NCBI GenBank assembly: GCA_002269645.1
Contig: NIVC01000827.1
Span: forward strand, 401,929 to 465,928
Source of the DNA: Macrostomum lignano
Taxonomy: Eukaryota
Length of the DNA stretch: 64,000 nucleotides
Direction of reading: 5' to 3'
Shown: piece after piece, positions 43,820 to 50,672 of the stretch
Numbering within the stretch: position 1 is the first letter of the stretch
How the letters are laid out: every line of letters begins with the position of its first letter
Made by a program: the position numbers and the translations under genes
The notes under the pieces: generated by a model
Seen by the model: only the letters and a program-made list of their open reading frames with translations
Database searches by the model: none
Told to the model about the DNA's origin: nothing

Positions 43820-45150
43820 TGCCTCAGTGTCCTTGAATCTGCCTCAGTGTCCTTGAATCTGCCTCAGTATCCTTGAATCTGCCTTAGTATCCTTGAATCT
43901 GCCTTAGTATCCTTGAATCTGCCTTAGTATCCTTGAATCTGCCTCAGTATCCTTGAATCTGCCTCAGTATCCTTGAATCTGCCTTAGTATCCTTGAATCT
44001 GCCTTAGTATCCTTGAATCTGCCTCAGTATCCTTGAATCTGCCTTAGTATCCTTGAATCTGCCTCAGTGTCCTTGAATATGCCTCTCTGATCCTTAAATC
44101 TGCCTCTCTGATCCTTGAATCTGCCTCTCTGATCCTCGAATCTGCCTCTCTGATCCTTAAATCTGCCTCTCTGATCCTTGAATCTGCCTCTCTGATCCTC
44201 GAATCTGCCTCTCTCTGATCCTTGAATCTGCCACAGTATCCTTGAATCTGCCTCAGTGTCCTTGAATCTGCCTCTCTGATCCTTGAATCTGCCACAGTAT
44301 CCTTGAATCTGCCTCAGTGTCCTTGAATCTGCCTCTCTGATCCTTGAATCTGCCTCAGTGTCCTTGAATATGCCTCTCTGATCCTTAAATCTGCCTCTCT
44401 GATCCTTGAATCTGCCTCTCTGATCCTCGAATCTGCCTCTCTGATCCTTAAATCTACCTCTCTGATCCTTGAATCTGCCTCTCTGATCCTCGAATCTGCC
44501 TCTCTCTGATCCTTGAATCTGCCACAGTATCCTTGAATCTGCCTCAGTGTCCTTGAATCTGCCTCAGTGTCCTTGAATCTGCCTCAGTATCCTTGAATCT
44601 GCCTCAGTATATTTGAATCTGCCTCAGTGTCCTTGAATCTGCCTCAGTATCCTTGAATCTGCCTCAGTATCCTTGAATCTGCCTCAGTATCCTTGAATCT
44701 GCCTCAGTATCCTTGAATCTGCCTCAGTATTCTTGAATCTGGCTCAGTATCCTTGAATCTGGCTCAGTATCCTTGAATCTGGCCCAGTGTCCTTGAATCT
44801 GGCTCAGTATATTTGAATCTGCCTCAGTATCCTTGAATCTGCCTCAGTATCCTTGAATCTGCCTCAGTGTCCTTGAATCTGCCTCAGTATCCTTGAATCT
44901 GCCTCAGTATCCTTGAATCTGCCCCACTGATCCTTGAATCTGCCCCACTGATCCTTGAATCTGCCCCACCGATCCTTGAATCTGCCTCACTGATCCTTGA
45001 ATCTGCCTGTGTCTTTAAATCTGCTTCAGTGGCCTTGAATCTGCCTCAGTATCCTTGAATCTGGCTCAGTCTCCTTGAATCTGGCTCAGTATCCTTGAAT
45101 CTGCCTCAGTGTCCTTGAATCTGGCTCAGTATCCTTGAATCTGCCTCTGA
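43820..45150. repeat. 20/21-nt minisatellite (AGTATCCTTGAATCTGCCTC)n, reverse complement of the 23.7/25.9-kb family
   Basis: Direct reading; also at 50121-50445. Confidence 0.96.
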
Positions 45151-45376
45151 TAATTAAATCTGCCGAATATTTTGTCTACTTCAGTTCCCAAAGAAATTAA
45201 CTCCTCACCTTAACGCTGATCGTCATGCTGGCAGTCCTGGGATCGGGCTGGTGACCATCGACAGCCCGAACCTCCAGACTGAAGACCTGTTGCCTCTCTG
45301 CATCCAAACTGCTGGCCAGCCGGATCTCTCCGCTGACTGAATCGATTCTGAACGGCTGCTGCAGGGGGTCGCCAAC
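44909..45376 (+). repeat. Left copy of a 468-bp direct duplication (target-site-duplication-like); includes a partial copy of protocadherin exon 2 (45209-45376) and its donor
   Basis: Identical by eye to 50205-50672 at offset 5296. Ends exactly at the LINE ORF1 ATG. Confidence 0.92.
45209..45376 (-). pseudogene. Orphan 3' half of protocadherin exon 2 with donor but no native acceptor
   Basis: [30 protein letters not shown]...ISVK|GTGAGG duplicated from 50505-50672. Confidence 0.85.
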
Positions 45377-46216
45377 ATGGAGGTTGATTCTGCCGCGAAT
45401 CCCGCGGAAACCCCCACACCTCGCTCAGGTGCGTCCACCTCTACCCCCGCTACAGGGGCGTCTCAAAATGACGGCTTCCAGGTCGTCAACCGTCGCAGGC
45501 GCGATGATAAAACCTCGGCTGGCTCTGAGCGGAAAAGGCAGCAGCCAGACGAGCGTACCGACCCCTCGCTGGACCCCAAGAGGCCAAAGGAGGCCAATGC
45601 TGGCACGTACGCCAAAGTGGCGACGGAGCCGAAATTTAAAATCTGCGTGCGCGCGGCTAGCGGTACGCTGACCACCGCCCAGATGGAAGCATCAATCGGC
45701 ATGATTGATGACTTCCTCTGGGAAAACGACGCCCTCGACATCAAAGTCGAGGCGATTCGAAACGCCAACGGCAGCGTCATCCTCGCCTTCAAGGACGAAG
45801 CCCAGCTCGAGCTCGCGCTGGCTAACCTGGTGTCCATCTCCTGGGACACCTGCACGACCGCCCTCCCGCCTTTGGTCGTTGAGCGTGCCCGACCACCGCC
45901 GCCCTGCAGGCGCTACCGAGCCTTCTACTCCGGCTCGAGAAGCATCGAGGAGATCCGCGCCCGGCTCCTCAGTAAAAACCCCGACCTACCTCAGGACGGT
46001 ATCCGGGCCTTCAAGGAGGTTCCGGCAAAAGGCGCTCCCGGCAAGACCCTGTACATGGGTTTCTCCGCGGAGTGGGAAGACGCCCTCAAGAAGGACGATT
46101 TTGCCGCCTACATCGGAGCGTGGAAGATCGTCTTCCACCTGCTGCTCAGGCGTCGTCCAGCCGGCGATCGGCGCCGAGGTGAGTCCGTGAGCTCGGATAG
46201 CTCTGGGAACGAGTAA
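45377..46216 (+). CDS. LINE ORF1 (279 aa, gag-like, no zinc knuckle seen)
   Basis: Basic, disordered N-terminus (NRRRR, KRPK, TYAKV). The C-terminal LLSKNPDL...LYMGF...[10 protein letters not shown] resembles LOA-clade ORF1 (DUF4780-like, from memory). Stop overlaps the ORF2 start. Confidence 0.75.
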
Positions 46217-50033: not shown

Positions 50034-50120
50034 TCCTTGTGCTCTTTTACCTTGGGGTTGCGATAGGGGCCTCACGGCCTATTCGCGGCGCCTGCGCCCC
50101 CCGTCAGTATTAAGTAAGTA

Positions 50121-50445
50121 AGTATCCTTGAATCTGCCTCAGTATCCTTGAATCTGACTCAGTATCCTTGAATCTGCTTCAGTGTCCTTGAATCTGCCTC
50201 ACTGATCCTTGAATCTGCCCCACTGATCCTTGAATCTGCCCCACTGATCCTTGAATCTGCCCCACCGATCCTTGAATCTGCCTCACTGATCCTTGAATCT
50301 GCCTGTGTCTTTAAATCTGCTTCAGTGGCCTTGAATCTGCCTCAGTATCCTTGAATCTGGCTCAGTCTCCTTGAATCTGGCTCAGTATCCTTGAATCTGC
50401 CTCAGTGTCCTTGAATCTGGCTCAGTATCCTTGAATCTGCCTCTG
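50121..50445. repeat. Same AGTATCCTTGAATCTGCCTC family directly 3' of the LINE tail
   Basis: Direct reading; 50205-50445 belongs to the duplication. Confidence 0.95.
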
Positions 50446-50672
50446 ATAATTAAATCTGCCGAATATTTTGTCTACTTCAGTTCCCAAAGAAATTAACTCC
50501 TCACCTTAACGCTGATCGTCATGCTGGCAGTCCTGGGATCGGGCTGGTGACCATCGACAGCCCGAACCTCCAGACTGAAGACCTGTTGCCTCTCTGCATC
50601 CAAACTGCTGGCCAGCCGGATCTCTCCGCTGACTGAATCGATTCTGAACGGCTGCTGCAGGGGGTCGCCAAC
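50205..50672 (+). repeat. Right copy of the 468-bp direct duplication
   Basis: Same sequence as 44909-45376. Continues into the rest of intact exon 2. Confidence 0.92.

Follow-up and report, generated by a model that had tools for sequence, protein, structure and literature searches.

The 64,000-nucleotide stretch of Macrostomum lignano DNA analyzed here (part of contig NIVC01000827.1 of the assembly GCA_002269645.1, hereinafter the window) contains a multi-exon cadherin gene on the minus strand. An intron of this gene harbors, in the antisense orientation, a retrotransposon without long terminal repeats (non-LTR; long interspersed nuclear element, LINE) that is bracketed by a direct duplication of host sequence. 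The duplication measures at least 468 bp under every explanation of the 80 bp that adjoin its perfect part. The arrangement is probably the product of a recent germline insertion through target-primed reverse transcription, which would have started in a minisatellite of the intron, with the second-strand break located about 550 bp away. The element and its flanks are the following (all coordinates are those of the window).

44826..45376, no strand assigned: upstream copy of the host block, with a perfect part at 44909-45376 (468 bp) and an imperfect minisatellite part at 44826-44908.
45377..50124, plus strand: non-LTR retrotransposon (LINE) of 4748 bp, slightly truncated at the 5' end and intact at the 3' end, as judged from its open reading frames (ORFs), domains and tail.
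50125..50204, no strand assigned: four minisatellite units adjoining the LINE tail; compared with 44830-44908 they show six differences, and two of their variants have no second occurrence in the window.
50205..50672, no strand assigned: downstream perfect copy of the host block, which runs straight into the remainder of the exon.

At an offset of 5296, all 468 positions match between 44909-45376 and 50205-50672 (468/468), exactly as an earlier reading of the sequence alone had claimed, and beyond this block the matching drops to the background level. The corresponding BLAST pair grows leftward to 44826-45376 and 50121-50672 (552 bp, 98.9% identity), with all 6 mismatches (5 substitutions and one 1-nt indel) confined to the outer minisatellite, 44830-44908 versus 50125-50204. 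A self-comparison of the 64-kb window identifies this flank pair as the sole long dispersed, non-tandem repeat, the remaining matches all belonging to tandem arrays. A chance match is excluded because about 230 bp of the duplicated block is non-repetitive. The accompanying claim that the identical copies bracket the LINE holds on the 5' side and fails on the 3' side, where the perfect copy does not adjoin the element and is separated from its tail by the four divergent minisatellite units at 50125-50204. In the orientation of the gene, the duplicated block consists of the last 168 nt of an exon, its GT donor (AAG/GTGAGG; here and below, the slash marks a junction), 61 nt of unique intron, and from 12 (perfect part) to 16 minisatellite units of 20-21 nt. 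The Cadherin score, the splice signal and the repeat units thus confirm the content that had been assigned to the block, namely the 3' 168 nt of the host exon, the donor, unique intron and minisatellite.

The inserted element shows the following organization.

45377..46216, plus strand: ORF1, 279 amino acids as present, an open reading frame with an N-terminus shorter than in other M. lignano copies.
46216..47694, plus strand: N-terminal part of ORF2, with an APE-type (apurinic/apyrimidinic) endonuclease (PF14529, E=9e-23).
47592..50033, plus strand: C-terminal part of ORF2, with reverse transcriptase (RT, PF00078, E=1.1e-30), RNase H (PF00075, E=7.1e-13) and a CX2CX8HX4C motif.
47600..47604, plus strand: C5 run, the sole break in ORF2, one base shorter than P0001 and P0002 imply.
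50034..50124, plus strand: 3' untranslated region (UTR), ending in ...GTCAGTATT(AAGT)3A; the last 4 nt, AGTA, equal the target bases that precede the duplicated block.

The segment 45377-50124 is single-copy within the window and contains no terminal inverted repeats; the only flanking repeat is host sequence, and the tail reads TT(AAGT)3A. The APE-type domain is the only endonuclease domain detected in ORF2. The C-terminal CX2CX8HX4C motif is visible in ORF2, and a 96%-identical copy is named 'Zf-RVT domain-containing' in UniRef, while the Pfam family zf-RVT gives no score at E<=0.01. By its predicted domains, the element is a member of the APE-type, RNase H-bearing LINE group (I / Nimb / Ingi / Tad1 / LOA / R1-like).

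ORF2 is 99-100% identical to many UniRef proteins of M. lignano, and therefore the family is young and multicopy. The insertion itself is very young as well: apart from one homopolymer indel, ORF2 retains this 99-100% identity to the other copies, and the flanks show 0 differences in 468 bp. The short C5 run at 47600-47604 would be either a genuine inactivating frameshift or a long-read homopolymer consensus error, and so bears on the quality of the assembly.

Comparison with other copies defines both ends of the element. In five M. lignano models (P0023, P0025, P0033, P0123 and P0132), the sequence MDKSKPPDTAREPSIPAAG... stands ahead of MEVDSAANP, the start of the window copy. Four of these (P0023, P0025, P0123 and P0132) contain the full N-terminal extension, MDKSKPPDTAREPSIPAAGGPSIPQPSN, of at least 28 residues, which is absent from the window ORF1, and P0123 and P0132 additionally share LLC ahead of it. 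Because these four models extend further, at least 93 nt of the 5' region is missing from the window copy, and the ATG with which it begins at its first base is an internal Met codon. At the other end, P0025 matches the LINE 3' UTR up to 50118, ending at a TAA within the tail; this M. lignano copy thus has the tail in common with the window element up to at least 50121, and the element terminates naturally here. A tetranucleotide microsatellite likewise closes L002, which at 55% identity is the closest relative found. The tails of the relatives from environmental contigs are (GATG)n(AGTG)3 in L002 (5150-5211) and (TTGGAAC)3 in L001 (5680-5710), a feature that fits tail-slippage priming in this LINE group.

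Several searches addressed other insertions of the family. Exact-protein look-ups of the window ORF1 and ORF2b returned no record of further copies with flanks, and the cluster listings of M. lignano LINE proteins consist of UniRef and MetaClust entries only, with no contigs. A scan of a metagenome contig collection for the LINE 3' end gave 0 matches. In the chimeric M. lignano gene models P0013, P0016, P0123 and P0132, no host peptide is repeated on both sides of the LINE part. The relatives L001-L003 (35-55% identity) contain no flanking repeat of 14 nt or longer, a result that is uninformative given that these are other families with short flanks.

The 5' junction of the insertion reads ...GGTCGCCAAC/ATGGAGG, and the intact target reads ...GGTCGCCAAC/TGAGCG. 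In other copies of the element, the residue before this Met is Asn, so that up to 3 nt (AAC) of microhomology is possible at the 5' junction. The 3' junction is ...(AAGT)3A/TCCTTGAATC; in the upstream array, the sequence before the corresponding unit is ...CTCAGTA, so that AGTA is common to the LINE tail and the target. There is no filler DNA at either junction. The LINE 3' UTR also contains GTCAGTA at 50103-50109, a near-match to CTCAGTA of the target unit; judging from these sequences, pairing between the 3' region of the LINE RNA and the nicked target may extend beyond the last 4 nt.

The two nicked-strand contexts, read 5' to 3', are GGATACTGAGGC (bottom) and GCCAACTGAGCG (top), and ACTGAG is common to both.

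44823..44828, minus strand: ACTGAG at the putative first-strand nick (plus-strand CTCAGT), in the minisatellite unit preceding the duplicated block.
50671..50676, plus strand: ACTGAG straddling the right end of the duplication (AC/TGAG), the first plus-strand ACTGAG, CTGAG or TGAG after the first nick.

Once the microhomologies are allowed for, both junctions are compatible with one and the same cut, AC^TGAG, and the predicted duplication is then 551 bp. The distribution of the motif is strongly one-sided: there are 33 bottom-strand ACTGAG in 43500-45400 (in most of the minisatellite units) and 0 on the plus strand of that segment, and the plus strand from 50125 to 50670 contains no ACTGAG, CTGAG or TGAG. 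This pattern suggests that the stagger could be long for the reason that a one-sided array offers the endonuclease no nearby site on the second strand.

Several lines of evidence jointly favor a target-primed insertion. The duplicates abut both termini of the LINE without filler; the element keeps its 3' end but has lost part of its 5' end, the classic asymmetry of this process; and the geometry is that predicted for a LINE on the plus strand, with the bottom nick at the left edge and the top break at the right edge. The same conclusion is favored by the microhomology (AGTA at the 3' junction and, possibly, AAC at the 5' junction), by the ACTGAG that the junctions share on opposite strands, by the presence of APE, RT, RNase H and a tetranucleotide tail, by the very young age of the element, and by the experimental documentation of LINE duplications of such a size. 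The sequence-only reading had wavered between strand breaks 470-550 bp apart and long gap-filling or repair by synthesis-dependent strand annealing (SDSA). The natural 3' end, the truncated 5' end and the geometry give the best support to staggered breaks, and SDSA survives only within a rival explanation considered below.

The insertion could have proceeded as follows. The endonuclease would nick the bottom strand within a minisatellite ACTGAG, and the freed 3' end (...TAC or ...TACT) would pair with the terminal (AAGU)n-A tail of the RNA and prime the synthesis of complementary DNA (cDNA). The top strand would break about 550 bp rightward, inside the cadherin exon, at the first top-strand ACTGAG. 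The 3' end of the top strand (...GCCAAC) would then pair over at most 3 nt with the cDNA internally, yielding the 5' truncation, and would prime second-strand synthesis. Fill-in of both single-stranded stretches would duplicate the whole interval between the breaks, with one copy rebuilding the full exon and its donor, and the other one remaining in the lengthened intron, downstream of the antisense LINE, as a piece of exon that lacks an acceptor. From what is directly observed (the repeat, the LINE with its domains, the junction sequences, the positions of the motif and the structure of the host exon), we infer both the order of these events and the role of the element's own endonuclease in making the two breaks.

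Four points weigh against this reading. It is based on one assembled copy, that is, on the filled site only, and the published M. lignano assemblies derive from noisy long reads of a partly polyploid line (PMC5730564). The coincidence of ACTGAG was noticed post hoc and is of only moderate significance: when the plus strand of the reconstructed empty window is scored with equal register slack, 3% of its positions show an in-register match of at least 6 nt to the first-nick context (empirical p ~0.03). Finally, there are 6 differences in the outer 80 bp, although the two copies should be identical at insertion.

The inner 468 bp contains 0 differences, and 238 bp of it belongs to the same minisatellite as the outer 80 bp. 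If change were uniform, the probability of finding all 6 differences in the outer 80 bp would be about 1e-5, or 2.5e-4 within the minisatellite part alone; with 6/80 against 0/468 differences, uniform decay therefore cannot account for them. Furthermore, the units at 50145 and 50165 are variants without any other occurrence in the window. Because the differences are clustered and two of the unit variants are unique, a one-step 552-bp duplication requires a second event or a haplotype switch of the assembly. There are three possible sources: the 65-unit upstream array may have undergone slippage, unequal exchange or conversion afterwards, with 44909 as the right breakpoint; the assembly may switch between haplotypes or homeologs within the upstream copy; or the 80 bp may be donor-flank sequence that came in by template switching or 3' transduction, and the duplication would then measure 468 bp. 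The favored scheme would invoke one of the first two, the differences having arisen after the insertion or through a switch between haplotypes. A simple register shift of the upstream array was rejected as an explanation for the variants at 50145 and 50165, both of which are absent elsewhere in the window. An origin of the 80 bp by 3' transduction was considered unlikely as well, as it requires a donor flank with nearly the unit order of this locus.

The same 80 bp figure in an explanation that we consider improbable, a templated insertion coupled to repair or replication (microhomology-mediated break-induced replication, MMBIR; fork stalling and template switching, FoSTeS; or SDSA). Under this scenario, a broken or stalled 3' end within the exon would have switched via AAC into a LINE copy elsewhere, copied that element through its 3' end and on into a flanking minisatellite of the same family (the units at 50125-50204), and returned through homology to the local minisatellite about 470 bp behind the break, duplicating 468 bp. 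Microhomology is available at both junctions, and the 80 bp beside the LINE tail, with unit variants absent from the local array, look as a donor flank would look. In addition, the same minisatellite family occurs at a second site in the window (~24.0-26.5 kb, inverted) and hence is dispersed, and the copying would have returned at 50205, where perfect identity has its boundary. However, such copying requires a donor LINE that resides in the same minisatellite family with a near-identical unit order. The inserted segment stops exactly at the natural 3' terminus of the element, as target-primed insertion predicts, and an endonuclease-like motif is common to both breakpoints. Templated insertion is also less parsimonious than target-primed insertion combined with a later minisatellite change.

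There is likewise only a small chance that the arrangement is an assembly artifact, that is, that the repeat-LINE-repeat order does not exist on one molecule and reads from different haplotypes or homeologous copies were joined or polished together. PacBio continuous long reads (CLR) were the basis of both published M. lignano assemblies, ML2 and Mlig_3_7, the latter made with Canu and polished with Pilon, and the DV1 line has extra copies of the large chromosome, with 312 Mb of the assembly duplicated (PMC5730564). The break in ORF2 is a one-base homopolymer difference, typical of residual consensus errors; the jump from 0/468 to 6/80 differences at 44909/50205 resembles a haplotype switch point; and short-read polishing can homogenize two copies of a repeat. 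Conversely, both junctions bear signatures of retrotransposition (the natural tail at one, the truncated 5' end with microhomology at the other), so that each must exist in reads, and two junctions in this order, with about 550 bp between them, require a duplication, barring two independent insertions of the same LINE in the same orientation in two haplotypes. The sequence is free of Ns, and there is no overlapping sequence through which the LINE tail and the minisatellite could have been joined falsely; even a haplotype switch within the upstream copy would require that the filled allele really has such a copy.

An older tandem (segmental) duplication of the ~550-bp block, with the LINE landing later exactly on its junction, was rejected as highly improbable: minisatellite-rich introns are prone to slippage and unequal exchange, and the outer 80 bp is more diverged than the remainder, but the LINE would have to hit the junction precisely and without a target duplication of its own, the 468 bp at 100% identity speaks against age, and nothing independent supports a junction that joins an exon interior to a minisatellite unit at its start.

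For target-primed insertion with distant breaks, the shared motif raises a broader, tentative hypothesis, to which we assign a clearly minor probability: the endonuclease of this LINE family might recognize 5-6 nt (ACTGAG, AC^TGAG) on both strands, so that the distance to the next motif on the other strand would set the length of the duplication, minisatellites with the motif on one strand only would serve as landing pads that force duplications of hundreds of base pairs, and long, variable duplications would be found across the family. Such motif-limited cleavage, if true, would mean long, variable duplications that copy parts of exons, as well as scar-free loss of the element by recombination between the repeats. 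For the poorly understood placement of the second-strand cleavage, ACTGAG at both breaks provides a concrete hypothesis.

The host gene can be followed over five segments and one orphan fragment on the minus strand.

53145..54149, minus strand: open frame with the upstream cadherin exon; Cadherin_2 (PF08266, 26.3 bits with a cut-off of 23) and Cadherin (PF00028).
50505..50828, minus strand: intact cadherin exon ('exon 2'); Pfam Cadherin E=6.2e-20, donor at 50504-50503, candidate acceptors near 50829 and near 50783.
45209..45376, minus strand: orphan 168-nt (56-codon) copy of the 3' part of this exon; Pfam Cadherin E=5.9e-10, GT donor kept at 45208-45207, without the native acceptor.
38440..38958, minus strand: next cadherin exon; acceptor cag/GTGGAGGAC at 38959/38958, reading VEDVNDNAP.
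36294..36809, minus strand: further cadherin exon, with a Cadherin domain.
34819..35568, minus strand: weaker cadherin match, below the Pfam curated cut-off.

PF00028 scores above the cut-off in three more minus-strand exons besides the 53145-54149 frame. Judging from the tandem cadherin repeats and the N-terminal Cadherin_2 domain, the host is a protocadherin-type cadherin gene, in a gene model that is built from domains and splice signals only. The exon starting at 50505 ends in ...ATCAGCGTTAAG/GTGAGG, and the following exon begins with cag/GTGGAGGACGTCAATGACAATGCT at 38958; the splice from 50505 to 38958, predicted from the splice signals and the linker only, yields TISVK/VEDVNDNAP, a canonical linker between cadherin repeats. 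A search of a 5.8-billion-sequence collection with the peptide of the cadherin exon matched no protein.

The downstream copy of the duplicated block is continuous with the rest of the exon, so that the exon, its donor and about 380 bp of intron are intact, whereas the antisense LINE and the 168-nt acceptor-less exon fragment are now intronic and the intron is 5296 bp longer. The outcome is therefore as described in the sequence-only reading, which had termed it a gene-sparing insertion mode; there is, however, no separate mechanism behind it, as any duplication between two breaks keeps both flanks whole. Because the first nick is intronic, an ordinary short duplication would equally spare the exon. 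Moreover, the insertions that are observed are only those that survived selection.

If real on one molecule, the arrangement nevertheless has consequences for the gene: the exon touched by the second break is preserved, and the intron now harbors an orphan piece of exon whose donor site is live. This donor, at 45208, could serve as a splice decoy, and recombination between the 468-bp perfect repeats around the 4.7-kb insert could delete the LINE precisely. A minus-strand open frame at 45200-45424 passes from the antisense LINE directly into the orphan exon fragment, and candidate cryptic acceptors precede the orphan donor at 45208 on the minus strand (cag near 45389 and ctgcag near 45362). A cryptic exon derived from this fragment, either chimeric or repeating 56 codons, is conceivable from these signals.

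The cadherin introns and flanks are filled with strand-asymmetric minisatellite arrays of 15-21-nt units (1-2683, 36807-38407, 38979-43392, 50832-52107 and 54996-58205), one of which consists of 294 copies of a 15-mer with 96% identity. These arrays yield long spurious ORFs on both strands. The 20-nt family of the insertion site, TCCTTGAATCTGCCTCAGTA, is found at 43820-45147 and, inverted, at 24000-26560; this second site marks the family as dispersed and carries ACTGAG on the plus strand. Two sites, 13928-14507 and 34380-34812, share a short-period satellite in inverted orientation, with 95-97% identity. Outside the cadherin gene, the plus-strand open frames 16214-16789 and 21575-22208 are C2-domain-like by eye (e.g., ...LSIRIIQAIDLQPKDSSTGLANPYCRVAVLPNRKTQTTTKIHKRTLSPEFEEEFIFEL), which suggests a synaptotagmin- or rabphilin-like gene on the plus strand. 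An Rfam search of the whole window gave 0 matches.

If the arrangement is present on one molecule, a repeat-rich model flatworm provides a clean, natural germline case, outside mammals and algae, of a LINE target duplication of half a kilobase. The starting assumption of the sequence-only reading, that LINE target duplications usually measure from a few to a few tens of base pairs, is right, yet a long tail is well documented, and the known cases differ from the present one in distinct ways. In mutation-accumulation lines of Chlamydomonas reinhardtii, de novo insertions of the LINE Dualen-4b_cRei are flanked by duplications whose median length is 900 bp and which have been read as target duplications from distant nicks (PMC9977147). 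The common feature is the combination of LINE insertions with long flanking target duplications. In Dualen-4b_cRei, however, the long duplications are a property of the family and the proposed cause is the possession of both a restriction-like endonuclease (RLE) and APE, whereas in the window the family is seen in one copy and only APE is detected in the element. The endonuclease of another non-LTR element, R9 of bdelloid rotifers, is of the R2-type restriction-like class. For R9, a 126-bp target duplication is given in the article that cites the original work (Gladyshev and Arkhipova 2009, cited in PMC9977147), and the title of that work presents the element as specific for ribosomal DNA (rDNA) and associated with a long duplication. 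R9 thus resembles the window element in being a non-LTR element with a long target duplication, but the window LINE is APE-type and resides in the intron and exon of a protein-coding gene, with a duplication 4 times longer. Because only an APE endonuclease is detected, the window element is neither Dualen nor R9.

Among the elements studied in cultured cells, ZfL2-2, a zebrafish LINE of the L2 clade, produced one 1228-bp duplication in DT40 cells (PMC2666801). It resembles the window element in its microsatellite-type tail and in a rare insertion with a duplication far above the usual length of up to 20 bp, and differs in that this was a single experimental event in a heterologous cell line and that the L2 clade lacks the RNase H domain. 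Human L1 generates duplications longer than 100 bp in up to 10% of the events in HeLa cells and, in cells deficient in nucleotide excision repair (NER), duplications with a median of 1495 bp and a length of up to 5.3 kb; the authors point out that such events can copy exons and that recombination may take place between the long repeats (PMC5223499). Earlier long human L1 duplications are known here through the citations in the same article (Gilbert 2002/2005 and Symer 2002, as cited in Servant et al. 2017, PMC5223499). The parallel with L1 includes the APE-type endonuclease, target priming, the 5'-truncated insert, and a direct target duplication of hundreds of base pairs to kilobases. The L1 events, however, come from cultured cells, in which only a defect in NER makes them frequent, whereas the window contains a natural germline copy in a flatworm; moreover, the window LINE belongs to another LINE group, bears RNase H, and has a tetranucleotide tail instead of poly(A). 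Thus, a long LINE target duplication is not new as such, the potential to duplicate exons has already been described for L1, and current models of LINE insertion are unchanged by the present case.

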